Origin: Octopus sinensis
Lineage: Eukaryota
Reading direction: 5' to 3'
Length of the DNA: 64,000 nucleotides
Assembly: GCF_006345805.1 (NCBI RefSeq)
Contig: NC_042998.1
Coordinates: forward strand, 44,082,001-44,146,000
The translations under genes were made by a program, and so were the position numbers. Positions 5,356-53,050 of this stretch are shown here, piece by piece; the stretch's first letter is position 1, and each line of letters begins with the position of its first letter. A model generated the notes under the pieces. That model had not been told where the DNA came from, made no database searches, and saw only the letters and a program-made list of their open reading frames with translations.

Positions 5356-5420
5356 TGATATACATAGGTAAATACATAGGTAGTAGAAGGAATAGATAGT
5401 AGAAGAATATATACATATGT

Positions 5421-5817
5421 GGCGCAGGAGTGGCTGTGTGGTAAGTAGCCTGCTAACCAACCACATGGTTCCGGGTTCAGTCCCACTGCGTGACATCTTG
5501 GGCAAGTGTCTTCTGCTATGGCCCCGGGCCGACCAATGCCAGTGGATTTAGTAGACGGAAACTGAAAGAAACTGTCGTATATATGTATATATATATATAT
5601 GTATGTGTGTGTGTTTGTCCCCTAGCATTGCTTGACAACCGATGCTGGTGTGTTTACGTCCCCGTCACTTAGCGGTCCGGCAAAAGATGCCGATAAAATA
5701 AGTACTGGGCTTACAAAGAATAAGTTCCGGGGTCGATTTCTCGACTAAAGGCGGTGCTCCAGCATGGCCGCAGTCAAATGACTGAAACAAGGAAAAGAGT
5801 AAAAGAGGAAAAGAGTA
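5421..5817 (+). mobile_element. tRNA-derived SINE family A, intact, with internal microsatellite
   Basis: GGCGCAGGAGTGGCTGTGTGGTAAGTAGCCTGC...GGGTTCAGTCCC head, internal (TA)/(TG) tract, 3' CCAGCATGGCCGCAGTCAAATGACTGAAACA and (AAAAGAG)n-like tail. Homologous to 20594-21062. Confidence 0.92.
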
Positions 5818-6809
5818 TATGTAAATACATAGGTAGTAGAAGGAATAGAGAGATTTGTGTATATTTATATCGTGTAATCTAATAAAATAAAGCGTGAGCA
5901 ATTGATCGCTTTGAGAGAAAAGAATTAAGAAACTCGCTTATATAGCAGTCTACTATTTACACATTCCACTTCTATTTGCTTATTCCTTTGGTGGGATTTT
6001 TGTATTTTTAGATTCATATTTTTCATCATTCATTTAACAGAATGCACAAATTGCAAAATCAACAAATGTCTATGACACATATTGGTAACTTGAAAGCGAA
6101 CTCGTAGTATTATTTCTGTCAACAACTTCCTGTCTGTATCACGAAGAGAAAAGAAATGCTTTATTGCCGATTGCCTGAACAGCACGACCGCATTTAATTT
6201 TCATCTCTATACCAATATCACCTGACACCTGGAATTGCAAAGCATAGATACGTGCAAAAGAAAATTTAAAATATTCAAGAGGAAAACGAAATCATCGATA
6301 AAACTATTTATATAAAATTTTTCAGATATAACTTCTCAACTTTATCAACAAATTTATATTCCAACAGAATGTTATGGATTGCTGATCACTTAACGATAAC
6401 TTGCTCTCATGATGCTCACAGTTTGTTGTTTTTTTATATACAAAACAAATTTACTTTGCAACCATTCGATTTAATCGCAATATCTTACATGTATTAATTT
6501 TATTGAATCCGTTAATATGTAAATCATGTCAATCTAGATCTATCCATCAAGGCAGATTTTGAAAGTAGTGATGTTAAAGAGAAAATAAATTCCAGTGCTT
6601 GTGCTAACATTATAGTTCCATTTTATTTGATATTATTATTTTACGAAGAGACATAATCAAAAACCTTGCTCATTCATTAGAATTAAATTAGACATGATTC
6701 CCAACATAGAATTTTTATCAATTGGATACCTTTACTGTCGATGTTGTTATGCATATATCCTTACTGCCTCTCGATCAGCTTCTACTTACTGAAACTAATA
6801 CTCTTTTAG

Positions 6810-6989
6810 GCTTTTAGTTGTTTCAGTCAATTCACTGCGGTCATGCTGGAACACGACTATTTGTTGAATAAATCGACCCCAGGATTTATTCTCTGTTTGC
6901 CGAACCGCTAGGTGACGGGGAAGTAAATACACCAACATCGGCTGTCAAGTCATGGCGGGGGACAAACACAGACACAAACAACAAACAAA

Positions 6990-7064
<75 letters not shown>

Positions 7065-7210
7065 TATATATATATACGACGAGCTTCTTTGAGTTGGCGT
7101 CTACCAAATCCACTCACAAGGCTTTGGTCAGCCCGACTCTATAGTAGAAGACACTTGCTCAAGTTTCCACCCTGTGGAACCCGTAACCATGTGGTTGGGA
7201 AGCAAGCTTC
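6810..7210 (-). mobile_element. SINE family A, 3' part; head interrupted at 7210/7211 by an insertion
   Basis: Minus strand starts GAAGCTTGCTTCCCAACCACATGGTT at 7210 and continues through the body, (TA)/(TG) tract and CCAGCATGACCGCAG tail. The first ~25 nt of the head are absent. Confidence 0.9.
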
Positions 7211-7765
7211 TTTATTTCATTAAATTAGCTATAATGGCTTTACATAGAAAAAGAAGTAATCTGTGGGCTGGACACAGATATAATGTTATATGAGATGAAA
7301 AACGAAAAGGATGATTAATGGGGGAAACAGACAATGCCCGCCGATTGTTGTTTCCCGAAAACATTGTTCTCTTATTTATCATACATGATGCAATAAAACT
7401 CTTACAATTGTTCATAATTGATAATTAAAACACAAAACTGAGGCACTTCGCCTCGTACCTTGGTTAAAAACAGAATGAGGTTTCAAACCTCTTATGAGTT
7501 CACAATATCGAGGCTTTCCAACCTCTTACCCATAGTCCTCTTCAGTATCGCTTGTGACCCCGTACCCCGCCATTTTCCACGCCTCACTCAAGCTCAAAGC
7601 GGATGGCGTGTCGGGGCCGCCCGACTACAAGCGATATTCCTCATTGAGCTTCTTAAGCCTTTGCAACACGTGCAACGTTATGACCTCCACAGCTACCTGC
7701 GGAGGCCATTCGGGATCCCGTGTGCAGGTCATAATTACTTCCTGAATTATGCTCGTGGGGCCCAC
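7211..7765 (-). mobile_element. 3' portion of ORF1-only L1/Tx1-like element (copy B)
   Basis: Minus translation TRDPEWPPQVAVE matches TEDLYWPPQVTAE of 39535-39720 (tggcctccgcaggta vs tggcctccgcaagta). The 3' UTR shares aatgttttcg..caacaatc.gcgggca, cagcccacag and terminal aatgaaataaa with 39870-40020. Confidence 0.85.
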
Positions 7766-7832
7766 TGGCATGTGACGTAGTGGTTAAGTGTGCGGCCTAC
7801 TAACCTCAAGATTCCGAGTTCGATTCCAAGCA

Positions 7833-7874
<42 letters not shown>

Positions 7875-7896
7875 TAATAATAATAATAATAATAAT

Positions 7897-8029
7897 ACTG
7901 CACACATCCTACGCAGAACACTTTCCATACAATAACCATCAGAGCATCACAACAAATCACAGCACATATCCAAGGCACACAGAGCTGCGCTCGGTAGTGA
8001 AGTGAAAGCACGATATAAAAATAAAACTA

Positions 8030-8032
<3 letters not shown>
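7897..8032 (+). mobile_element. 5'-truncated R4/Dong 3' end nested in (AAT)n
   Basis: 7897-7935 encodes TAHILRRTLSIQ*, resembling the R4/Dong C-terminal GTAHILR motif, followed by a ~100-bp 3' UTR. (AAT)n lies on both sides. Confidence 0.75.
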
Positions 8033-8097
<65 letters not shown>

Positions 8098-8147
8098 CAT
8101 TGAAAAAATACCTTAGGAATAAGAACCCTGATTCGAAATTTACTCAA

Positions 8148-8193
8148 GGCACCTGATGAAGGCTGGATGGTATATTAGCCGAAACGTTGTTTT
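8148..8193 (+). ncRNA. Minimal type I hammerhead ribozyme motif
   Basis: GGCAC-CTGATGA-A-GGCTGG-atggtata-TTAGCC-GAAACGTT-GTTTT: core CUGAUGA...GAAA, 6-bp stem II (two GU pairs), palindromic ACGU stem III, and stem I GGCAC/GTTTT (GTGTT in the sister copy). Confidence 0.75.
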
Positions 8194-8299
8194 AACAATA
8201 AGCAAGATTAGGACAAATATCCGTCAACTGTAAATAATGTACATAATATTTCTTCTTATAAAGGCAGAGAGCGGCATTACGCCCTTCTTTTTGAACTGT

Positions 8300-8440
8300 A
8301 TTCAAATGCCACCAAGGTCGACTTCACCTTTCATCCCTTCGAGGTAGATAGAATAAGTAGCAGTTGAATACTGCGGTCGATGTAATAGATTTAACCTCTT
8401 CCCGAATTTGCTAGCCTTTAGCTATAATTTGAAACCGATA
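8300..8440 (+). mobile_element. SINE family B fragment
   Basis: AGGTCGACTTCACCTTTCATCCCTTCGAGGTAGATAGAATAAGTAGCAG core, shared with 12690-12920. Confidence 0.75.
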
Positions 8441-9624
8441 TTTCTTGTTATAACTACGTGGGAAAAACTAAATTTTCTGCTTATTTCTTTACAATCTGTG
8501 ATTTCTCTAATTATTTTTATCGTGACCTAATATTACTGTACGGCATGACACTGATAATAACCTGTATCAATTGCTTATATGGTATGTACTGGTCATCTAT
8601 TCACAATCTTATACTCTTTGTTTTATAAAACCCTTTCGTCCGTAAGACAAATCACAATATATTTAGGATATCTAACCTGATATAGATGCGATCGTGTATT
8701 TCCCAGATATTTACACGGAAGGAAGATATAGCCTTTTCTGTATTTTCTCAATAATATATTGGTGTTAGATATAAAAAATACTCTTAGTATTATTTGTTTT
8801 ATATTTTATAGCATGGAGATTTAAAATATGGCTATATCTTTAAATTTTACGTTTGTATTTTTTTTCTTTGTGAATTTGTACAGAACTATTTCCGTATGAT
8901 ATGTTTAATCTAAGTATTTCATAAAAGATTTATCAAGTTATGAGTGAGTCTAAAATATCTGTTTCAAATTAATATAAAATACAAACATTTAGTAAAAGAA
9001 TTTTCTATACAGGCCCAGATATAAGAAATAATATTGGCTTATCAGTTTGCTTTTAGCTGAATTAGCTTTAACATGAAAGTCAAACAATGCGTCTAATACC
9101 TTTGAGTATGTGAAATGAAGTCTGAATAGTAAAAACATAGCAAGAAAGAAAACAAAGCAAGCGTTTACTTATTTAAAACATTGTTTACATGTTTCGTCCT
9201 TTTTTATCGTTTTTTGTGGTGTCCTTTACATTTTGTCTCATTTGTAATCGACTGTGAGATCTCTGTAAGATAAAACAAGAAATTGGCGGAACAAACAGTT
9301 GGAGAATATATAAATGTCGCCTGATGCAAGAGTGTTTTATTTATTTTAACTTAAAAGAACAAATTGTTTCACCATAGTTATGTTTTTAAAAGCAACAACA
9401 CTTGAATGAGAGACAGTGGCAAAATCTTAAGATTTCTTGTTTAAATGTTTCATTGTCAACATGAATCGCCTTGATATGTACCCAACAGTAAGTAATATGA
9501 AATTGGGTTTTTAGAAAATGTCTGTTTACTTAGTCACAATATTTTCTTTAACCCTTTCACTTAAGAACACTAGATTTGTGGCTTTTCAAAAAGTTATTTT
9601 AATTTCGATATTTTGAACGATGTT

Positions 9625-10050
9625 AAGGCGGTGGTATGGCCGAATCGTTACCACGCCGTGAACCATGCTAAACATCATTTTGTCTGTCTCTACGATCTGA
9701 GTTCAAGTTCTGTCGAAGTTGACATTTCTTTTCATCCTTTCAGAGGTCAATAAAATAAGTATCAGTTGAACACAGAGGTCAATGTAATCAACTCATTCCC
9801 TCCCCAGATGGCTGGCCTTGTGCCAAAATTTGAATCCAATATTTTGAACGATGTTCCGTTGGCGCATTAGCATAATGTTTAGATTAACATTCAATATGCA
9901 CTGGTTCTTTACGTTCTGATTTTCAATACCATCGGGTACAAGTTTGCTTTTCATTTTAGAGAGGTCGAAAAACTAAGTATCAGGTAACGGAGTCAGTGTA
10001 ATTCATTGTTCCCTATCCGAAATCTGAGGCTGTTACAAATGAAAATTATG
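9625..10050 (+). mobile_element. Two adjacent degraded SINE family B copies
   Basis: tctgagttcaa...ttttcatcctttcagaggtcaataaaataagtatcag motif, repeated in more degraded form at ~9905-9990. Confidence 0.7.
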
Positions 10051-11188
10051 AGTACTAGCTTATTATATCTATATGTAAACTCTTGGGTGATTCAAGATCG
10101 AGAATTTCGTTTCTTTACCAAGTATATCTAAACCTATGTTCCAGTTAATCTATGCAAAACAAATCAATATGATGTACTCCATTAAAGAACGATTTGATCA
10201 TAATATAAGTGGTAAGAAAAATGTAATAAATCGACTGTTGTATCTTGTACAGCAATCTTTATTTTCTGTAGGAAAATGAATTTATTATATTACGAAGTTA
10301 TATTATAATATCAAACATTCACATTTTTTTATAACTTACATGGTACATAGCTCTTGAGATATAAGTTCGAGTATTCCAGATTATTCATCTAATATTTAGT
10401 ATTTGCATTTCATTAACGATCGATATATATTTTTATATTCTCCCTGCCTTCCAATATTGTTGAATTATTTTATTTTTGGTCTTCATATCAACGTAATATT
10501 ATCCAATATTTCATCGTTCACTGACATGTTATTTTCCAGATGATTGGATGAAGACAACTGTTGATGTACCTATGTTCCTTTGGATAATTGAATACGTCTT
10601 TTTTTATTTTATTTTGTAGCTAACGTAATACACTACCCGCTCTTTATCCAACTTTTTTCATACTTATGATAGTTACAGTATATATTAAATTATGTACAGA
10701 AATATATTACTAACATCTAAACATTTAATGCAGTTATTCATAACGAAAGAGTGGTGTTGTTGGACTTCTGCAGAAGATACTATTATCAATTTCCTCTCTT
10801 AACCTTTCTCATTTGTACGACAAGAGTATGGGTAATATATAAATCCATCAAGTCTATTCTTATCAGCCTTTTCAAATAGTGATATTGTACATATATATAT
10901 ATATATATGTGTGTATGTGTGTGTGTATGTATATACATAAGAGCGTTGTAGTTCGCTTGAAGCATTGTAGTATCGAAGTAGGTAAAAAGAGGCTAAATAG
11001 AAAGTTTCTGACGATGCAGAAAGTTTAATAAAACCTCTATTTTTCAGGTGAAAAGGCCCATCTTCAGAAGAAAAAAAAACAAAAACATATATATATATGT
11101 ACACACACACGCACACACACACATACGTATGTTTATTATGTATGTATGTATGTATGTATGTATATACGTGTTATGTTCACACATTTAA

Positions 11189-11437
11189 TGCTGTGCATGC
11201 CACAGGGTTTGCAAATCTAACAGAGGCCCGAAAAAACATTTTGTGATCCACAAAGATCAGAACTTAACTGCAGCTCTTGCTGGTCGAAATCAGATATGTA
11301 ATCTATGTGGGTGTGTTTTCAAAACACTCTCTGATTTAAAAAGGCACATCAGGCGCCATGATGAATCTAAAGTTTAAGTACAAGATGTAGTCAGACTCTG
11401 CATGAGGAGCGGACAACCACCACCAGCATGTATGTAT
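11189..11437 (+). mobile_element. Probable RTE-type LINE 3' end encoding two C2H2 zinc fingers
   Basis: 11189-11377 is open for 62 codons: CCACHRVCKSNRGPKKHFVIH-KDQNLTAALAGRNQI-CNLCGCVFKTLSDLKRHIRRH-DESKV*. It is followed by a short UTR ending caaccaccacc and is flanked by (ATGT)n. Confidence 0.6.
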
Positions 11438-12637
11438 TTATTGGTTTTTAGCAAAAATAGGCGAAAGAAGAATACTTTATAACCATTCGAAATTCGAAAA
11501 TTAACCTGAAGTAGTTAATGTCATTGCTAAAAACAATTTCCGCTAAATGGATTATCTCGAAATACGCATATTTGAAAAGTTGCACAACGAAAGCACTTGC
11601 ACAGAATATAAAAATGTCATTCAAAATTATTCATATCATTCCATTTTTCCCAATTTTATTAAGTAATATTTTTTAAAGAAAATCTTTATACATATATACA
11701 CACACACGCTTGCGCGCACACACCCACGTACACATATATACAGAGAGAGAAAGAGAGGCAGACAGACAGACAAACAGACATACAGATAGAGTGAGGGAAG
11801 GAGAGAGGGGAAGAAAGGCTGAGACAGACAGACAAATAGACAAACAGACAGAGAAAGAAAGAAGAGAGAGAGAGAGAGAGAGAGAAAGGTGCAAATTAAA
11901 AAGTAATAGTCTTCACAAACGTCTTTGCGTGTGATCTCAGTATATTAGTCATTTATTTGAGACGATGAATGTGGGCAACAATTTCAATAGAGCCCTGATC
12001 GGCTTCACTACAATGTTATCGTATTTAACTCGTCTGTAAATGTATGCTTTCTAATAAGAATAGTAAAATATTCTAAAAATTTAAAGCATTTCGCCATGTG
12101 ATCTTTTCTCAGCTAATTATTATCGAAGAAATATGGTGTTAGTAAACTTCATAGTGATATAGTTCTATACAATCACCTGACTATTTGTTTCAGGATATTT
12201 GAAGAAGCTCTAAATCTAGTTTTGATATCATCGAACAATGGAAAACATTTTCATTGAAAAGAGTAAACAAATTATTCAGTTCTCATCCGCAGAACACTTG
12301 ATGTACTACAAAATTATTCGTTTTTATAAAATATCTTTACAATACTTTGAAATTGTAAAAACTCCTATTGCTCAAATTTTTAACTGATTACAAATTGTCA
12401 TGTACTTTCACACTGTTTCATTCACATAAACACTAGATAAACCTGTCTTAGCATGATAAGCGCCAAGCATTAACAAATTGTGTGGAATGGCAACCAACTA
12501 GAAAATTGTATCTCTTTGACAGAAGCAAGATGGTGGCAGTAACAGCAATGGAGTTGATAAGTAAAAGAGAGAAGCATAGATAACTAAGATCTCTTTCCTA
12601 CAAAATGTTTGTCATTTTATCAATATTTCATTGCCCA

Positions 12638-13060
12638 TTAAGACGACGAGTTAGCAGAATTGTTAGCACGCCGAACAAAATGCTTAGAGGCAGCGAGCTG
12701 GCAGAAACGTTAGCACACCGGGCGAAATGCGTAGCCGTATTTCGTCTGCCGTTACGTTCTGAGTTCAAATTCCGCCAAGGTCGACTTTGCCTTTCATCCT
12801 TTCGGGGTCGATAAATTAAGTACCAGTTACGCACTGGGGTCGATGTAATCGACTTGATCCGTTTGTCTGTCCTTGTTTGTTCCCTCTGTGTTTAGCCCTT
12901 TGTGTGTAGTAAAGAAATAGGTATTTTCTACGTCTTTACGTTCTGAGTCCAAATTCTGTTGCGGTAGACTTTGCTTTTCATCCTTTCGGGGTCGATAAAA
13001 TAAGTACTATTGAGCACTGGGGATGATGTAATCGACTTAGCCTCTTGTGCCAAAATATGA
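12638..13060 (+). mobile_element. SINE family B nested inside an older family B copy
   Basis: The old head (12638-12688) breaks at gcttag|, a young complete copy follows (~12689-12920), and the old copy resumes at ggtattttctacgtc with a second core. Confidence 0.8.
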
Positions 13061-13939
13061 AATAATTAATTGCTCACTCAATTCGTTAGCGTATAGATTG
13101 GCAAATGTTGTCCGTTACATTATAGATATTTATTAGAGAAGGGATGAAAACAATCTTAGAAAGAAGTGTAGATGTATCGCCATGATACATTAATCTAAGT
13201 TAAGAAATATTTCACGATTCACTACTATTTAACTATTGAATCTCCCTTAAAAGCAACACGTTTTAATAGCTTAACGAATAGCAATATCCCTATGAATAGG
13301 AAGTATATAAATCCATTAAAATAGTGTTAATACAAATGTATATTTCTCGGTACAGTAAATTTCGAGAAGGAATGGAACTCCCACAGAAAACAGAGGAGAG
13401 GAGGCTTGCAACAGAGATTTATTTATAGAATACTCACGAGAAATATCCATTATCTCCTAATAATTTCATTAGAAGTGTATAGAACTCAAAGATGGTCAGC
13501 TCTTCCAAAATACTTCCTGCACTTTCTACATAGATTTTCATAGAAAATAAGTCAATCACTAGCGGCAGTGTCAAAGTAAAATCTTATTTACAGGGAAACA
13601 GATTTGTTAGTCTGTATGAATTTTTTTGGTTCTGAGAAGAAATATTTGTGCACTTTGTCCCTTCATAATGACCGAGTTATCGTTGTATTTAGATGAAAAG
13701 TTAAATTACTTTATGTGTAAGTGCAAAGTTTTACAATGTGTAGTTTCTCTCGCCGAAAAGTTGATTATCTAGCCAGAATCTGAATATTAAGCATACTCTT
13801 CGGCATTATTTAACATGCTAGGGATGTGTGAGCAGTAAATCATTCCAAAAACAAACTGCATCAGAAAAATGGCTTATGATTATAGGTACATTAGTTATTT
13901 TAATATACATAACACAACGTATATTCTTTCCGGCACTTC

Positions 13940-14145
13940 GCACAAGACCCGAAATTTTGAAGGAGGAGGCCGATTGATTAGATCAACAACTTTACGCAAC
14001 TGGTACTTAATTTATCAACCCCGAAACGACGATGAAAGGCAATGTCGACCTGGGTGAAATTTGAACTCAGAAAGTAAAGACAGACCAAATACTGCTAAGC
14101 GTTTTGCCCAGCGTGCTAACGTTTCTGCCAGCTCGCCGCCTTATA
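13940..14145 (-). mobile_element. SINE family B
   Basis: Minus GGCGGCGAGCTGGCAGAAACGTTAGCACGC...TTCTGAGTTCAAATT head plus core. Confidence 0.85.
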
Positions 14146-14288
14146 ATACAACATATATTGAAATACTGACTGCAGTGTTGAGATAAATTTTCTTTTATTT
14201 TCATGAGTTAACACTTTGCTTTAACGATTTGTCAAATATTTATGCTACTTATTGACGAAGAACGTAGAATACTCGTATCCCTGCTGCT

Positions 14289-14545
<257 letters not shown>

Positions 14546-14839
14546 ACATATATGTGTATCTGTGCGTGTATTTCAATTCGAATATTTAAGTATCAATGCA
14601 TACAAATCATTACCTCAATTTTAACGCTTTATTTTTCGAATTCCACTTAGACGTTTTCCCTGATTTTGTTAAACTTATTTTAGCATTGAAAATCTATTTT
14701 TAATATAATCTGTTTTTCTTTGGAATTTACATTTCACTAAAGCCTCTTCCTTTATGCAGATATAAATCCTTAAATCCTTAAAAATGTTTTAGCCCGAAGG
14801 CCGCGGCCATGCTGGGGCACCACCGCTAAATGAGCTACA

Positions 14840-17800
14840 CTAGTTTGTGAATCCACCTCTGATACGTGGCACTTGATCAACAAGGGAGTTCGATGCTGCT
14901 GCCGCATCCGTGTCTCCTGTCGTGAGGTAGGTTCACCTGGGACTCCCAACAAGAAGAGATCCAGTTTAGTTTTAAAGAAACCCACATCCACACCATGTAA
15001 GTCTCTCAGGCATTTAGGGAGGATGTTAAAGAGCTGTGGTCCTCTGAAACCCAAGCTGTTGCAGTATCTGGACCTGTATTTTGATGGTGATGTTGGAATC
15101 CTTGGCACCACGCAGCGGCGCCCCGTTCTGCGGATGGAGTAACTTTGAATGCCAAAGTTTGGGACAAGACCCTCCAGGATTTTCCAGATGTATATCACTG
15201 CATATCTCTCCCGCCTCCACTCCAGGGAGAAGAGGTTTAATACCTTCAGTCTTTCCCAGTAGCTGACATTTTGCATTGAGACGATTTTCTTTGTGTAGCT
15301 TCTCTGAGTTGCTTCGAGTTCTGCTGTTTGTTTTATATTGTGTGGTGACCAAAGTTGGGAGCAGTAGTCCAAGCGGCTGAGGACAAATGTTTTCCATAGG
15401 ACCATCAGTGTCTCCTTCTCTCTTGTTCTGAAAGTTCGGAGAATCCATCCAGCTAGCCGTCTGCATTTTATCACCAGATTAGCAATATGCATTTGGAAAG
15501 ATGCATCATTGCTCATGTCAATGCCCAGGTCACGCACTGATTTTGACTCAGGGATTGCAATTCTTCTGGGCCAGTGTATCCAGTCTTCACGTCATTTACC
15601 TTTGTGTGCCAGTAGCGCAGGGCCTGGAACTTACCTGCATTAAACTGCATGTTGTTGTCCTCAGCCCACCTGTATATTGTGTCCAGCTCATGTTGCAGAT
15701 GCGCAATATTTTCAGGGTTTTGTATTGCGTGGGAGACTTTTGTGTCATCTGTATAGCTAGCAAGGGTGGTCATCGTAGCAACTGAAGGCATGTCTGAAAG
15801 GGCCACTATGAACATCAGTGGCCCCAAGACAGTGCCCTGTGGGACACCGCTTGTTATTTGCGTTTCCCTGGAGGTGGCTCCATTGCTCACAACTGCCTGT
15901 TTTCTGTCTTTTAGGAAGTTGTGCAGCCACTCTCCAAGTTTCCCGCCTATGCCGAGAACACGCAGTTTGTGACAGATCATACCATGGTCGACTTTATCAA
16001 AGGCTTTTGCAAAGTCAAGATATATTACATCCACATTTGAGCCATTTAGTAGCTGTTTCAACACCCAGTCATAGTGTTGCAGGAGCTGTGTTAGGCAGCC
16101 TCTACCTGGTCGAAATCCATGCTGGGTGTCAGACAGTAAGTCATTTTCTTCAAGGAACATGATTAGTTTCTTACGGACTATTCGTTCCATGACTTTGCTG
16201 ATGTGTGAGGTCAGAGAGATAGGCCTATAATTTTTAGCATCTGCTCTGCTACCTCCCTTATGGATAGGGCATATTACCCCTCTTTCAGTTTGACTGGGAG
16301 CTTACCACTTGCAAGAAAGCTCTGAAAAAGAAGCTGTAGCGGTTTTGCAAGGGCTCGTTTGCACGATTTGAGAAGGATCGCTGGGAATCCATCAGGTCCA
16401 GCAGCTGAGTTTGTGTCAATCTCATCAATGGCTAGTGTGATATCATCTTCTTCGATGTTGATGTACTCCTTTTTTGTCTCTTTGGCCGCTGGTAAAGTGG
16501 CAAAGAATTCTTCTGGGTTGTTTACTTGCCTGTGTCCTAGAGGTGTAGTGAACACACTTTGGAACTGTTCGTTCAGTATTTCACATATCCTCGTGGGATT
16601 TCCTGTGAGAGAGCCATCTTTTTGGAAGAGAGGTCCTATTCTCTGGTGCACTGTGGCTGTCTCTTTGGCAAACTTAAAGAAAGCTTTAGGGTTTGATTTT
16701 ATATTTTCTATTACCCAAGCTTCTTTATCTGCTCTCTCCTTTTCATGGGACTGATGTAGACTTTTCTCAGTTTCCATTAGCATTCTTTCGAGCCGAGACT
16801 TCTCACCACTTTTGGTGTGCTTGCTCAGGCGGTTTTCAATCCTTGTCCGTCGTCTCATAAGAATCCTCCTTTCTCTAGGGATCCTGTTTTTGTTCTTGTG
16901 TGTGCTGGCCCTGCACATTGGGACATATTTGTCACATATGGCTTGTATTATGGACATGAAGTGTTTGTGTTTCATGTTTATGTCCGGTGTGGAGAGACAT
17001 TCAGGCCAATCCTGTTTGAGGATCTCTTTCTCAATCGACTTCCAGTTGGCTTTATGAAAGTTTAAGTTGGAGAGATGGTGGGTGCTTCGTATAGGCTGTG
17101 TGTCTGCGGGGGCTTTTGTTCCATACATAGACAGCTCTATTATGTTGTGATCCGAGATCATTGTCGGCATCACATTAACATTATGGATAATATCCATATT
17201 GTTTGTGAAGCAGAGATCCAGTATATTATCTGCCCTTGTTGGTTGCAGAACTATTTGCTCCATGAAAGAGGCATTTGTGAGATGGAGCAGGGACTCCACC
17301 TGTGCCTGCTGATGGTGTGTCATCCCTGGGAGCATCTGCCCCCAGGCCATTCCACATTGGGGAGGTTAAAGTCACCCATGAAGAATACACTGTTGTGCTG
17401 TTCAAGGTTGGTGAGGACTTCTCCTATTTTTGTTAGGCAGTCTTCAAACATGCCTGAGTGTTTTGGGGCATCTGGTGGGCGATATGTAGTGCATATGACG
17501 ATATTCAGTTGTCTTATGTGTACAATTTGAGTTTCACATACTGAGTTTGAATATGACAGCAGGACCTGGGGCGTGAGGTCATCTCGGATGTACATTGCAA
17601 CTCCACCATGGCTCCTCCCTTTTCTCTCTGTGCGTATGACTGCATATTGCGGCATGTGTATTTCTGCATCACCTATATCGGGTTCAAGATGCGTTTCTGT
17701 GAGTGCCATGCATATAGCTTGATTGCATGTCACAAGGTCTCTCAGGAATGAAATTTTCTTTTTACAGTTTCCGCGCAGCAGCCCTCCTACATTCAGTAGA

Positions 17801-17847
17801 AATATTTTTGTGGTGTGTGTGTTGGTGTTGATGTCTGTGGTGGCCAT
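14840..17847 (-). pseudogene. LINE ORF2 (APE endonuclease + reverse transcriptase), split by four -1 frameshifts
   Basis: EN motifs LNVGGL, ALTETHL, GGVAMY, MGDFNLP, ILDLCFTN, SDH. RT motifs GPDG, QHGFRPGR, YLDFAKAFDKVDH, GVPQGTVLGP, YTDD, DLGI. Restoring one G at each of four sites gives 3012 nt = 1003 aa + stop, ending AAASNSLVDQVPRIRGGFTN*. Confidence 0.93.
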
Positions 17848-17869
17848 CCTGCATCTGTTGGAGGTGGCC

Positions 17870-18694
17870 TTATGTGGTGGTAGTTCCAGCTTTTGCTTGT
17901 AGCCAGGTCAGCTGCTGAACAATTTTTTGTGCCATGCACAAAAAAGACTCCTGTTCAGCTGCCGCCCTTCTCACATCTGGGTGAAGCTGGCCACCTGTTG
18001 GGTTTCCGCGCACCACATCTGCATACCGTCTTTCAGTAGTGGTCAGTGCGCTTTTTTCCCTTCTTTTAACTTTTTGTTTTTGTTTTTGTTCTCCCTGAGG
18101 CAGGGACCTCTGTCTCGCGTCCGTGCGGTTTTGGTAGGGCCTCCGATGTGCAAAGCGACCGTTTGCACCTTCAACGCCGTACCAGCAGTCCCCCCTCAGG
18201 TAGAATTTGCAGGTGTTTCTTTCCCTGCCCTTACAGTTTTTGCTGGGGTCCCTCTGCTTTCTCTGGACAGGGCTTCCTTTAGCCTTGATTCTGTCACCTT
18301 TTACCTCCTGCTTCCCATCAATTCCAGGGTGCCTTTCCTTTCTTGCGGCCATCGCACCACTTTGGTCTTCAGTTGTGGTGTTGGAAGCTGGACATGTGTC
18401 ATCGTTTCCCTGTGTTCCAGGCTTCTCCATTTGGCTCTGGATGCTTTCCTCATCCTTTTGGCCCTCCCTGCTGCCGTCACCTCCCAGGATGATGTCCAGT
18501 GTGTCCACATGTTGCCTGATTAGAGCGTACGAACGGATAACTTCTCTCTTCTTTCGCTCTATCTGGGCGGTGGTTCTCGAAAAATTGTTGCTTTTCAGCG
18601 CCGCAGCAATAATGTCGTTCGGCGAGTCGTCCTCAGCGATCCTCCAAGCGCGGACGAACAATTGCACCTCTCTCGCAGACCAGTTTCTTGCCAT
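17870..18694 (-). CDS. LINE ORF1 protein, 274 aa: N-terminal Myb/SANT (trihelix)-like domain and degenerate CCCH zinc finger
   Basis: Intact ORF ending 22 nt before the ORF2 ATG. WSAREVQLFVRAW...RTTAQIERKKREVIRSY and CKFYLRGDCWYGVEGAN(G)RFAH. Confidence 0.85.
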   Translation of the reverse strand: MARNWSAREVQLFVRAWRIAEDDSPNDIIAAALKSNNFSRTTAQIERKKREVIRSYALIRQHVDTLDIILGGDGSREGQKDEESIQSQMEKPGTQGNDDTCPASNTTTEDQSGAMAARKERHPGIDGKQEVKGDRIKAKGSPVQRKQRDPSKNCKGRERNTCKFYLRGDCWYGVEGANGRFAHRRPYQNRTDARQRSLPQGEQKQKQKVKRREKSALTTTERRYADVVRGNPTGGQLHPDVRRAAAEQESFLCMAQKIVQQLTWLQAKAGTTTT

Positions 18695-19881: not shown

Positions 19882-20593
19882 GTGATTCCTTTTTATAAGA
19901 AAGGAAGATAGATAGACAAGACAGACCTTTTATATTCCCCAAGCGCACTTTGTAAACAAAAGGGATTTGAGTTTCGATTTAGCACATGCAACAGTTTGAC
20001 GATACTTTCTGTATTTTCCTAAGCGATTTGGTATTAAGCAGCAAATTTTTCAGAGGCTTTTTTCAGAACACGCAGATATACATCAAAAACGAAAATATCC
20101 TTCTCAAAAATACTGTGTCTTGTTGATTCACAGACGAAGAATAAAATTCACTTCGATTTCGGGAAGTAACACACGTGCGTTTTAACACGTGTATTCGCGA
20201 GTATGTTCTAGTTGCAAATACTATATCAAAAGCGAAAATATTCTTCTCAAATACAGTGACTTGTTGTACTATCACTTATATTCGCTTTGCAGACAATTTC
20301 GCTTCTGATAACATCGATCTCTGGAAGGACTTCTTTAATATTTAGGAGAGACACGTTAACACACTTGTTGTTAGTTCAGCGCCATCTTGATATATCTTGA
20401 TATATATATTTGAATTTAGGTTGAAAATATCTCTAAAATTCTGCATTGAAGTCTGAAATATACTATTGGCAACAATATTTTCAATATTGAAATTGCATAA
20501 CGCTAGCAAGTATTCATTATATAGAAAGAGTTGATAAGTAAATAATACACAGCTTATCAAATTTAATATACATGTACGTATATAAACATACAC

Positions 20594-21062
<469 letters not shown>

Positions 21063-27139: not shown

Positions 27140-27375
27140 CAAGTCGGACTAAATACCGCTAAACATTTTGCCCAGCGTGATAGCCACCTAGATAATAATA
27201 AATTCAAATTTTGACACGAAGCCCTCAATTTCTGGAGAATGGGTAAGTCGTTTACATCGACCCCACTTCTCAACCGGTACTCATTTTATCAACCTTGAAT
27301 GAACGAAAGGCAAAGTAAACCTCGGCAGAATTTCAACGCAAACCGTAAAGACAGCATGCTAGCGACTCTTCAAGC
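27140..27375 (-). mobile_element. Degraded SINE family B pieces
   Basis: Minus-strand ctgccgaggtttactttgcctttcgttcattcaaggttgataaaatgagtaccgg core, and a head-like segment at 27150-27190. Confidence 0.6.
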
Positions 27376-37412: not shown

Positions 37413-37960
37413 TGGATAAATTGTACAAGGTTTATAAACGTATGATGATTAGAGCACCGGCACAGTTTCGATTACCTTCGTAGATAGATAGAAATATACA
37501 TACATACATATATAAATGTGTGTGGGTGTTGTGTGAGTGTGTGGTGTGTGTGTGTTTGTGTGTGTGTGTGTGTTTGTGTTTGTGTGCAACAGTGCTGTTT
37601 TAAACCATGGGTACACTTGGCATTTGTCGGGACCCCAAGCATCTAGGGTGCCAATTCTGTTCTATGTATATTTTGCCATGAAGTCAATGAATAAATACTG
37701 AATGGCCCAGTACATTGATTTGCTTAGAGGCCTATAATACTGCTAAGATGGCTCTGGTGATTTACCGATGATAGCAGTGTCAAACGCTCTCATTCACAAA
37801 ATAAACCAAGATTCAGGATAAAACACAAGCACGGGTGGTAATATGAAATTATATCACCCAGAAGAAACACACTACAGAAGAGGTCTGTGGAAAAGGCAAA
37901 AACTCACGATGATGCTCCAGATGCGTGAGTTATATATATGTATATATATATATATATATA

Positions 37961-37993
37961 GGTGCAGGAGTGGCGGTATGGTAAGCAGCTTGC
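37961..37993 (+). mobile_element. SINE family A 5' stub (A box plus left TSD)
   Basis: GGTGCAGGAGTGGCGGTATGGTAAGCAGCTTGC matches the first 33 nt of the family A head. Confidence 0.85.
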
Positions 37994-40020
37994 GTGAGTC
38001 TGTTGTTTTTGCACTGAATGCTGTCAAGACGTGCTTTCGCAGCGCGCTTCAACTGAAAAACGTCGAAGGCGCGACTGTAAGGTAGGTATCTGATTTTGAG
38101 GAGATTTAGCGGGGTTTGTTATTTGATATTGTTTTGCTTTTTGTAAATAAGAAATCTTCACCGGGTCCCGGATATTTGTCTGCCTGTAGACTCGCGCTAA
38201 GTGACTCACTTAGCTGTGAGAATTATTGTTTTGGGGGCGTGTCTCACCTCCCAAAAAATTGTGGAATTTTAACAAAAATTGTGGATTTTACCAAAACTTT
38301 GTGATACTCGTACCGATTTTGTGGCCCTGTGTTCCTGCTCGTGGATTACCCTAGGCCAGAAGTACTCTCGGCCGGAATTGTGCTTTATTTTGCTGTGTTT
38401 TGAACTACCTTCCTTCTTTCTTCTATCTTCTTTTTGTTTAGACTTCGGACCTTTTTTTGAACTTAGGTTTGAACTTTTTTTGCTCTCAATATGGCAAAGA
38501 AAGATAAGGTGCTGGAGTGCGAAATTGTGCTACCCAAACGGTGGATAAAAAGTCTTGAGGAGAGGACGGTGGTGCTGCGAACGTACTCCAAGTCGCTCGA
38601 CACCATCGCCCTCTTTATAAAGACCGACATAGAAAGAGAGTTGGCGGAGTATATGCCAACTATAAAATTTATTTCCAGGGGTGTCAAATATGCGACGGTG
38701 TGGCTGCTATTTGACACTTCTGAAGAGGCTCGCAATTTTGCAAGTCAGCCCTTAGAGGGCGAGGATATATTGTTTCTTCCCACTTATTGTGGGACGAAGT
38801 TGATTAGGGCTTGGGTCTACAGTTGTCACTCAGGATAGAACACGAGTGGATAGAAGACACTATCCGCCGGGGTCTTGGTGGCAGCGGAGCCAAGCTCCTC
38901 AATGACAAAATTTTGCCTGCGCTGGTTGAGTGGTATCAAAAGCGGTTTTGACCCTGTGGACCCAATCAGCCAAAAATCTGGTGTTTCAAGAATTTCTTAA
39001 AATGCTGGTTCTAGGTATACGGTGATTCTCGAGGGACGCCCTCCGTAAGTATTACCTGTGCCTGGAAGCGGGGCATAATAATAAGAACTGTACCCTAAAT
39101 AGGGGCCTGGAGCAGTTAATATAAGTAGCGGCCCCCGCTTCACCTTTGGGGGGAGGAGATGAAGGTAGTCGAGGAGGTGGAGGCCTCCTCGAAAAAAGGA
39201 AAAATAAAAGGAAGAAGGTGAGCAACAACGGTTGCTCACCGAAGGAACTTAAAGCTGCAGGAGAGAGGGAAGATCCTCCGAATAAAGCAGAGGTACAACA
39301 ACCTCCCGTAGCACAAGGGTGAAAAAAAAGAAAAATACAAAGTATGGGACATTGCCGACGGTTGGTACTGCACTGCCAGCATGTCCTGAAACCTCGTCGG
39401 TGGGAATTGTGCCACCGACGGAGGAAACTGTGGCTTCCTCCAAGTGCTATGACGGATGATATTGTGATCTTCTTCCATAAGGGAGGGGCGATACAGAGCT
39501 TCGTAAAGAAGCTGGAGGGCCGGAGGGAGGGACCTTGCCCTGGACTGAAGATCTGTATTGGCCTCCGCAAGTAACTGCGGAGTCGCTAACGGAAGTTGGA
39601 ATGTTCAGGGTGATGGACTCCTTTCCGAAGGAACAGGATAGCTTTGCTTTTTTGCGCACCCACCTGGAACTACAGGAGTGCCTGCAGGAGGCATATGGCC
39701 TGATTGGAGAGAAAGGATAAGAGGTCTTAGTGCCTCAATTTTCATTGTTTATATTGTTTGTATTCTTTGGTAAGATGCTCAGCCTCTCAATTTGTAAATA
39801 CGATTATGTCAAATATTTTTGAACTGAGGTAAGATGTTTGGTGCCTCATTTTGTTTTGTTTTTAAATAAAAAGAGCAATGTTTTCGAGAATGCAACAATC
39901 AGCGGGCAATGCTTGCTTCTCCCATTAACCATTTCTGTCATTTCATCATCATCGTGTCCTCGTCTAGCCCACAGCTACTACTTCTGTGTAATGCCTTAAT
40001 GGCAAATCGAATGAAATAAA
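37994..40020 (+). mobile_element. ORF1-only L1/Tx1-like non-autonomous retroelement (copy A) inserted in a SINE head
   Basis: Bounded by (aa)gcagcttgc 37983-37993 and (aa)gtaacttgc 40019-40029. ~500-bp 5' UTR, decayed ORF1, ~300-bp 3' UTR ending AATAAA. No EN/RT sequence. Confidence 0.85.
38491..39720 (+). pseudogene. Frameshifted ORF1/gag-like protein (RRM-like region, CCHC knuckle, charged linker, conserved C-terminal domain)
   Basis: KFISRGVKYATVWLLFDTSEEARNFA (RRM-like). VILEGRPP followed by xYLCLEAGHNNKNC (C-x4-H-x4-C, first Cys lost) at ~39020-39095. Ends WPPQV...LQEAYGLIGEKG*. Confidence 0.7.
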
Positions 40021-40355
40021 GTAACTTGCATACCAACCATATTGTTCCGGGTTCAGTCCTACTGCGAGGCACCTTGGGCAAGTGTGTTCTACTATAGCTA
40101 TGGGCAGATCAAAGCCTTGTGAGTGGATTTGGTAGACGGAAACTGAAAGAAGCCGTCGTATATATATATATATGTGTGTGTGTGTGTATATGTATATATG
40201 TTTGTGTGTCTGTTCCCCCACCATCGCTTGACGACCGATCCTGGTGTGCTTACGTCCCTCTAACCTAGCTGTTAGGTAAAGAATGAGTGCTGGGGTCGAT
40301 TTGTTTTACTAAAATAAACCCAGTATGGCCACAGTCAAATGACTGATACAAATAA
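40019..40355 (+). mobile_element. SINE family A, remainder after the insertion
   Basis: AAGTAACTTGCATACCAACCATATTGTTCCGGGTTCAGTCC..., body, microsatellite and CAGTATGGCCACAGTCAAATGACTGATACA tail. Confidence 0.9.
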
Positions 40356-40402
40356 AAGAGTAAAACAGAATATGTGCGTGTGTGTGTGAGGGGGCGCTTG
40401 TG

Positions 40403-49508: not shown

Positions 49509-49844
49509 CATATATGTATATATTTATTTAATAAAGCTTTTCTTTGTTATACTTCGAACGAAGCAAATTTTAGAGATTTCATTTAGAAAATTAATTATTC
49601 CACGAATAATCTTTGCAATTTGGCAAACGTGAATGAATGAATAAGCACCAGATTTTCAAAGTAAGTTTTGGGGTCGATTTTGCACAAAGTAAGATATAAA
49701 AGATAAAAAGCTAAGGCTGTTACACAAACTCAGGCTTCGCTGAGTGGTCATAAGCTTGGTTGCTAAGCAGCGGTTCTGGGTTCAGTCACACACCGTGATA
49801 GTTTGGGCAAGTGTCTTCTACTATATATCCGTCTTTATATACTG

Positions 49845-49985
49845 AGTTCAAATTTCGCCGAGGTCGACTTTGCCTTTTTTCCTTTTGGGGACGACGAAAC
49901 AAGTAACAGCTGAGTACTGGGTTCGATGTAATCGATTTACCCCCTCCACCAAGTTTCTGGCCTGGTTCCTATAGTAGAAAGTATT
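49845..49985 (+). mobile_element. SINE family B fragment, preceded by a family-A-like head relic
   Basis: ctgagttcaaatttcgccgaggtcgactttgcctttt core; gggttcagtc...ttgggcaagtgtcttctacta at 49775-49825. Confidence 0.7.
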
Positions 49986-52834: not shown

Positions 52835-53050
52835 TAAAACGGTGAGCTGGTCAAATCATTAACGCGACACACAAAAGATTCTTGGTAACATTTTTGTCCG
52901 ACCACATTTTCGTTTTCAGTGTATTTTCCGTCGAGGTTGACTTTGCTTTTATCCATTTGGAACAGAAAAAATAAGTACAAGTTGAGTACTGAGGTCGATG
53001 TGATAGACGACCTGTTCACATCAAAATTGCTTACTTTGTGTCAAAATTAG
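52835..53050. mobile_element. SINE family B, degraded
   Basis: gtcgaggttgactttgcttttatccatttggaacagaaaaaataagtacaagttgagtactgaggtcgatgtgat core on the plus strand. Confidence 0.65.

Follow-up and report, generated by a model that had tools for sequence, protein, structure and literature searches.

We describe a retroelement of about 2 kb that sits inside a short interspersed element (SINE), here termed SINE-A, in a 64,000-nucleotide stretch of the Octopus sinensis genome (contig NC_042998.1, positions 44,082,001 to 44,146,000; hereafter the window, in whose numbering positions are given unless a locus is named). As seen, the element represents a family of non-autonomous retroelements of ~2 kb without long terminal repeats (non-LTR retroelements), made up of a 5′ untranslated region (5′UTR), a first open reading frame (ORF1), a short second frame and a structured 3′UTR. 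The same position in SINE-A is occupied, in the same orientation, in 5/5 readable junctions from four loci (three 5′ junctions and two 3′ junctions). The reading that we favour, and hold to be on balance probable, is that the element targets the SINE-A head site-specifically, with its enzymes supplied in trans.

SINE-A is present in four copies in the window, two of which carry the element. Both uninterrupted copies lie on the plus strand, at 5420–5800 and 20591–21057, and present the empty target. Their heads read GGTAAGTAGCCTGC at 5440 and GGTAAGTAGCTTGC-TAACCAACC at 20606, and both follow the form ...GGTAAGTAGC(T/C)TGCTAACCAACC.... A preliminary description of this DNA had placed the insertion site between the A and B boxes, and motifs resembling these boxes do lie on either side of it: the site falls just 3′ of the A-box-like motif TGGCTGTGTGG and 5′ of the B-box-like motif GGTTCAGTCCC, both read by eye and spaced by ~45 nt. 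No tRNA was called in the SINE-A head by ARAGORN or Rfam. Every SINE-A copy also contains an internal (TA)n(TG)n microsatellite of highly variable length (for example at 20746–20860 and 40155–40212), and the younger copies contain a 30-bp internal duplication that is absent from the two element-bearing copies. The intact copy at 5420 is surrounded by a perfect 25-bp direct repeat, ATACATAGGTAGTAGAAGGAATAGA, at 5372–5396 and 5825–5849; the repeat is offset by ~23 bp on the left of the SINE and so does not form a simple target-site duplication.

Copy 1 of the element lies on the plus strand and splits a SINE-A copy in two, as had been proposed. The upstream half of the host (SINE-A nt 1–34 at 37961–37993; 85% identity over 33 nt in a BLAST comparison with intact SINE-A) stops after ...GGTAAGCAGCTTGC and is followed by 2027 bp of unrelated sequence at 37994–40020. 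At 40019 SINE-A restarts with AAGTAACTTGCATACCAACC, and the downstream half of the host runs from nt 24 to the normal end of the SINE at 40361. SINE nt 24–34 are present on both sides of copy 1 and form an 11-bp target-site duplication, which reads AAGCAGCTTGC on the left (37983–37993, by direct reading) and AAGTAACTTGC on the right (40019–40029) and is identical at 9/11 positions. The 3′ end of the element is ...AATGAAATAAA, of which the final two A are ambiguous with the SINE. Directly before the split SINE-A, at 37925–37960, there is a (TA)n run similar to the internal microsatellite of SINE-A, which may be what is left of a further SINE-A or mark a favoured SINE landing site.

The second copy in the window is a diverged, 5′-truncated relative on the minus strand (7211–7765), comprising the end of the short second frame and the 3′UTR. 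It is ~67% identical to the last 550 nt of the element by BLAST, and 72% identical over the last 150 nt. SINE-A follows directly, from nt 24 to its end (6811–7212, minus strand), and the junction, ...AATGAAATAAA|GAAGCTTGCTTCCCAACC, falls at the same SINE-A base as in copy 1. A search of the window for the 29-nt junction pattern AATGAAATAAAGNANCTTGCNNNCCAACC gives two matches, against none in 100 shuffles, so the junction common to copies 1 and 2 is not due to chance, and the earlier observation that this minus-strand relative ends at the identical point is upheld.

Two further copies were reached outside the window by an all-against-all HMMER search. Their ORF1 proteins, P0001 and P0002 (loci L067 and L068, respectively), were retrieved by protein similarity only, and the flanks had no part in the choice. 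The loci lie on two O. sinensis chromosomes (assembly GCA_006345805.1). In both of them a complete SINE-A head, ending ...GGTAAG(T/A)AG(C/T)TTGC, is found directly upstream of the element 5′UTR; the 5′ junctions read ...GCTGAGGCATGGCTGTGTGGTAAGTAGCTTGC|TTCCTGTGCATG... in L067 and ...GGCGCAGGCGTTGCCGTGTGGTAAGAAGTTTGC|TTCCACTGCGCATG... in L068. These two copies begin TTCC, which ruled out a reading of copy 1 as an intron from its initial GTGAGT and final AG. The recurrence of one exact site at L067 and L068 supports the sequence-specific targeting of a SINE that the preliminary description had deduced from the two copies in the window; copy 2, which lacks a SINE head, does not stand as a clean second insertion.

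The L067 copy (10001–10846 of that locus) retains a fully intact ORF1 of 281 aa, annotated as gene LOC115225585, although it lacks everything 3′ of ~nt 1500; this ORF1 could be recently active, expressed or co-opted. In L068 (10001–36638) the gene model for P0002 is a chimera, in which the first ~45 residues of the element's ORF1 are joined to the integrase (rve) core of another retroelement downstream. Additional searches yielded no further member of the family. The 115-aa ORF1 fragment from the window gave no match as a protein query, nor did a concatenation of ORF1 and the second frame, in which low-complexity words dominated. When metagenomes were scanned with a conserved 3′UTR 18-mer, 66 loci came up, none with similarity beyond a chance match to the 18-mer, and the other contigs (distant LINE relatives in O. 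bimaculoides, LINE denoting a long interspersed element, and short Logan contigs of another species) contained no further copy.

We compared the copies and their surroundings for signs of separate insertion. Over the 150 nt that precede them, the three heads (copy 1, L067 and L068) have unrelated sequence, and similarity begins exactly where intact SINE-A copies begin; the preliminary description had named segmental duplication among the findings that would overturn its reading, and the unrelated upstream sequences rule it out. Identity among the element copies is 67–79%. Between copies 1 and 2, weakly constrained segments of the element match at 55–56% over all columns (50–51% when shuffled), whereas the attached SINE bodies (nt 24–150) match at 79% over all columns (50% when shuffled). 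Because the element segments are near saturation while the SINE bodies are not, the SINE parts appear to postdate by far the separation of the element lineages. Moreover, intact SINE-A copies are closer to each attached SINE body (81–87% identity for copy 1, 76–83% for copy 2) than the body of the other host is, and the divergence contrast between copies 1 and 2 suggests that each element lineage acquired a near-consensus SINE separately. The three heads are still 85–88% identical to the SINE consensus. At the 5′ junction the SINE side is fixed and the element side is not: copy 1 starts ~15 nt later than L067 and L068, with a TGC microhomology at the join, and a variable element 5′ end of this kind would be a typical mark of separate integration events. 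Runs of T5–T6 occur within 130 nt of the junction in copy 1, L067 and L068, and since these would stop RNA polymerase III (Pol III), the head is unlikely to form part of the element's transcript. Together these comparisons, which are indirect and drawn from four loci, argue for independent insertions rather than one inherited junction.

The element contains no LTRs, terminal inverted repeats or poly(A) tail, and its non-LTR hallmarks are completed by the 11-bp duplication of copy 1 and the 5′ truncation of copy 2. The 5′UTR is ~500 nt long (37994–38490 in copy 1, delimited by alignment, with a T5 run at 38006–38010). ORF1 of copy 1 (38491–39322) is decayed, with the first 115 codons open and frameshifts and stops beyond them. 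It shares 72% of its residues with P0001, an intact 281-aa O. sinensis protein annotated as uncharacterised, in whose AlphaFold model residues 12–100 form a confident beta-alpha-beta-beta-alpha-beta fold; the best Foldseek matches to this fold are RNA-recognition motifs (RRMs). The RRM fold is followed by a CX2CX4HX4C zinc knuckle that is canonical in L068 and degenerate in both P0001, where the Pfam zf-CCHC score is below cut-off, and copy 1, where a remnant lies at ~39059–39091. Comparisons of ORF1 gave synonymous divergences (dS) of 0.8–1.6 and non-synonymous to synonymous ratios (dN/dS) of 0.10–0.18, values which indicate that the ORF1 lineages are old and under purifying selection. The second frame spans ~130 codons (..DD[IL][VL]IFF.., ..WPPQ[VI]..) and lies at 39344–39720 in copy 1, where it contains one frameshift (..DDIVIFFHKGGA.. 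to ..WPPQVTAE..). In the 3′UTR of 300 nt (39721–40020 in copy 1), GAGG-N(5-10)-CCTC hairpins occur three or four times; its last 150 nt are conserved and finish with AATAAA (40015–40020). The folding energy of the whole 3′UTR of copy 1 is unexceptional (z = 0.02), and only the local hairpins are conserved.

The preliminary description had set the element beside Tx1-clade LINEs; the copies themselves are not those of a LINE encoding an apurinic-type endonuclease (APE) and a reverse transcriptase (RT). In copy 1 and L068, the two copies readable past ORF1, ORF1 leads through the ~130 codons to the 3′UTR with nothing between, and there is no ORF2, endonuclease or RT frame; the family as seen is therefore non-autonomous. 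The second region does not resemble the APE or RT encoded by distant relatives, and no remnants of either enzyme were found in the element. In O. bimaculoides, relatives of ORF1 at ~30% identity have Exo_endo_phos and RVT_1 domains downstream, which assigns this type of ORF1 to APE-type LINEs.

Several observations weigh against site-specific targeting as the source of the shared junction. No SINE-A head was found upstream of copy 2, even with SINE-B, a later insertion adjoining its 5′ end (7764–8455, plus strand; possible flanking repeat CGTGGG), removed, whereas a clean 5′-truncated site-specific insertion should retain the head. Upstream of SINE-B no further element sequence was found for copy 2, and only unrelated sequence was exposed. 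The 7-mer TTAGTTT stands directly after the SINE-A 3′ end of copy 2 (6792–6798, minus strand) and again at 8465–8471, adjoining copy 2 on its 5′ side when SINE-B is taken out. This pair gives a weak hint of a duplication around a unit of truncated element and SINE 3′ part; 36% of shuffles yield some 7-mer match in the compared stretches, and only the position of TTAGTTT is suggestive. Copy 2 may thus be a retrotransposed read-through product, not a clean second insertion in place. Furthermore, a 30-bp deletion and three other derived states are common to the SINE parts that host copies 1 and 2, and all are found in 0/5 uninterrupted SINE-A copies. We tentatively read these states as marks of an older SINE subfamily, but they fit descent of a composite lineage equally well. 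Two other candidate marks of such a subfamily, CTACTATAG and CAAAGCC, were discarded as they also occur in uninterrupted O. sinensis copies. The copies at L067 and L068 are without their 3′ parts, so that their 3′ junctions are unreadable, and a search for the lost parts gave microsatellite matches only. The searches brought to light no autonomous partner sharing the 3′ end, and slippage between TGC repeats could have deleted the 15 nt by which copy 1 differs at the 5′ junction. Finally, the sample is four loci, and the window that supplied two of them had already been singled out by the preliminary description. That description had seen neither the headless state of copy 2, nor the missing endonuclease and RT frame, nor that the window holds only four copies of SINE-A.

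The most developed alternative is that a single ancient insertion made a unit of SINE head, element and SINE body, which then multiplied whole through recognition of the SINE 3′ tail by the SINE's partner LINE, the junction being inherited and not chosen. We consider this quite unlikely. It would accommodate the headless copy 2 with its possible TTAGTTT flanking repeat, the absence of an RT or endonuclease from the element, and the deletion and other states common to both host SINE parts. Machinery of this kind may also exist in the window, in that a minus-strand LINE at 14770–18694 has a 3′ end resembling the SINE-A tail, with a ~26-nt core in common (GGTGCCCCAGCATGGCCGCGG) whose local score equals the best of 200 shuffles; on this similarity, that LINE may be the partner LINE of SINE-A. 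However, parts that diverge together should be about equally diverged, which the 79% identity of the SINE bodies and the near saturation of unconstrained element segments contradict, and each of the two SINE bodies resembles ordinary SINE-A copies more closely than it does the other. In all three full 5′ ends the sequence starts at nucleotide 1 of the SINE, and a multiplying unit would need transcription to start exactly there, whereas complete heads follow automatically if a full SINE was hit. The T runs near the junction would stop Pol III, and the element side of the 5′ junction varies between copies. The SINE-A head might instead be favoured by LINE endonucleases generally, the family having no specificity of its own. 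Nothing direct speaks for this, beyond the abundance of the SINE and the nick in an A-rich step (GGTA|AGT); it appears very improbable, as 5/5 junctions come from one element family at the same base and in the same orientation, and no other insertion was seen at the site in five uninterrupted SINE-A copies or in the other repeats examined. We give slightly less credence again to spread by recombination, in which an occupied SINE converts empty SINE copies via its flanking halves, with no retrotransposition into the site. The genome contains many copies of the sequence on either side of the insert, and identical junctions would arise by construction, but the 5′ homology is only 34 nt, copy 1 has a true 11-bp site duplication, the element 5′ end is variable at the junction, and the element lineages have diverged deeply while under selection, as replicating elements would. 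A segmental duplication or an assembly artefact has nothing in its favour and is refuted, since the flanks beyond the SINE are unrelated, the copies are 67–79% identical and not near-identical, and the junction recurs on two chromosomes of GCA_006345805.1.

If the element does target the SINE-A head, target-primed reverse transcription would most likely insert it at a single fixed site, oriented like the SINE. A nick would open the bottom strand at SINE nt 23/24, a position uncertain by two A, and the top strand would be cut 10–14 nt beyond it. That second cut would follow nt 34, or nt 38 should the TTCC of L067 and L068 be SINE sequence, which a TTCC variant in the host SINE of copy 2 suggests it may be. 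Such staggered cuts would leave a duplication of 9–11 bp, possibly 15 bp in some copies. An autonomous relative would supply the endonuclease and RT in trans; it would probably be an APE-type LINE resembling the distant ORF1 relatives of O. bimaculoides. Because AATAAA lies at the extreme 3′ end of the element, transcripts probably end inside the downstream SINE, and the SINE tag that they carry could pair with a freshly nicked SINE and prime cDNA synthesis. Pairing of downstream target sequence in the transcript with the nicked target has been described for R1 and R2. Copy 2 would be a by-product of this process, arising by read-through to the 3′ tail of the SINE and subsequent retrotransposition elsewhere by the SINE's partner LINE. 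For the host SINE, the insertion parts the A-box-like from the B-box-like motif by 2 kb, and it is reasonable to predict that the SINE copy would be silenced. An extension of this model, which we put forward tentatively and regard as unlikely, is that the RT-less, ORF1-only lineage, kept by purifying selection, is a long-surviving (dS around 1) and dedicated hyperparasite that uses the SINE twice. The SINE head would serve as an exact landing site, with the downstream SINE in the transcript possibly priming integration, and the SINE 3′ tail would allow an occasional ride on the SINE's partner LINE and hence dispersal to non-SINE sites. Such a lineage would depend on two LINE machineries, with a third parasite as its habitat.

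The preliminary description knew of no such parasite of a parasite in cephalopods; retroelements that parasitise transposons are, as a kind, already known. Tx1-clade LINEs insert into other transposons, with Tx1L entering Tx1D in Xenopus and Tx1-Mar entering Mariner-N4_AMi in crocodilians, and LTR elements and Harbinger are also targets (PMC4494074). The SINE target would be the new aspect: no report was found of a SINE as a specific retroelement target, or of the octopus element itself, in a literature coverage that is incomplete and leaves novelty unproven. Like Tx1L and Tx1-Mar, the octopus element, in the copies seen, has a fixed position and orientation inside an abundant mobile element and a short target duplication; unlike them, its target is a SINE head, and its copies encode no endonuclease or RT. 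In octopus, LINEs of the L1-Tx1 group occur and have been active recently (PMC13282606, PMC8967140). Tx1-Mar also mobilises SINEU-3 and other non-autonomous elements, and ~90% of SINEU-3 copies are found in Mariner-N4_AMi; target specificity was taken in that study as the same sequence in >20% of flanks (PMC4494074). The octopus element resembles SINEU-3, which shows the target specificity of its helper, in being non-autonomous, and differs from the short, non-coding SINEU elements in being 2 kb long and having an ORF1 under purifying selection.

Other LINEs insert at multicopy RNA genes, among them R1 and R2 in 28S rDNA, Keno and Utopia in U2 and Mutsu in 5S (PMC4494074, PMC3706591, PMC4640811), and Dewa targets a tRNA-Leu spacer (PMC3706591). 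The octopus element has in common with these a multicopy, Pol III-type or small-RNA-like safe landing site, a precise 3′ junction and the absence of poly(A). It differs in that its target is itself a parasite and not a host gene, such that insertion would cost the host nothing and would disable a competitor. SVA-type retroelements match the composite origin considered above, being mosaic units moved by the machinery of another element; the divergence pattern and the complete SINE heads of full-length octopus copies set the octopus element apart from them. In its coding content the element resembles HAL1 ('half-L1'), being LINE-derived with ORF1 kept and ORF2 absent. HAL1 elements are mammalian L1 derivatives that have ORF1, lack ORF2, depend on a helper and are not known to be site-specific.

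Genome-wide confirmation would add SINEs to the safe-harbour targets of site-specific retroelements and would establish a three-level parasitic chain, with a LINE, a SINE and, within the SINE, the element as its levels. SINEs account for >10% of octopus DNA, and so do LINEs (PMC13282606). If confirmed, this would be a natural sequence-specific integration system whose target exists in very many near-identical copies, and it would be useful for studying how endonuclease specificity and 3′-flank pairing set the insertion point. That ORF1 has been conserved for so long without an RT is also relevant to the role of ORF1 proteins in cis.

The LINE at 14770–18694 is near-complete and belongs to a different family from the element, with a 274-aa ORF1 carrying a CX7CX..H-type motif, and with Exo_endo_phos and RVT_1 domains; a look-up with its ORF gave no record. 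Locus L070 of O. bimaculoides (CM046605.1) holds two copies of a distant LINE relative of the element, with ORF1, APE and RT, arranged head to tail at 10001–15030 and 15737–18390 of that locus. A tandem arrangement is common among site-specific LINEs. SINE-B, besides the copy at 7764–8455, has a second copy on the minus strand (29790–29568), and consists of a tRNA-like head, an internal (AAT)n block and a tail module common to other repeats; the (AAT)n block of the copy at 7764–8455 is enlarged and interrupted by 150 bp. Several repeats, at 12764–12855, 13997–14065, 27241–27336, 49829–49945 and 52934–53007, have in common a tail module (..AAGTACCAG..GGGGTCGATGTAATCGAC..) that resembles the SINE-A core ..AATAAGT.C.GGGGTCGA... 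This common core across several repeats and SINE-A suggests that they belong to a SINE superfamily.

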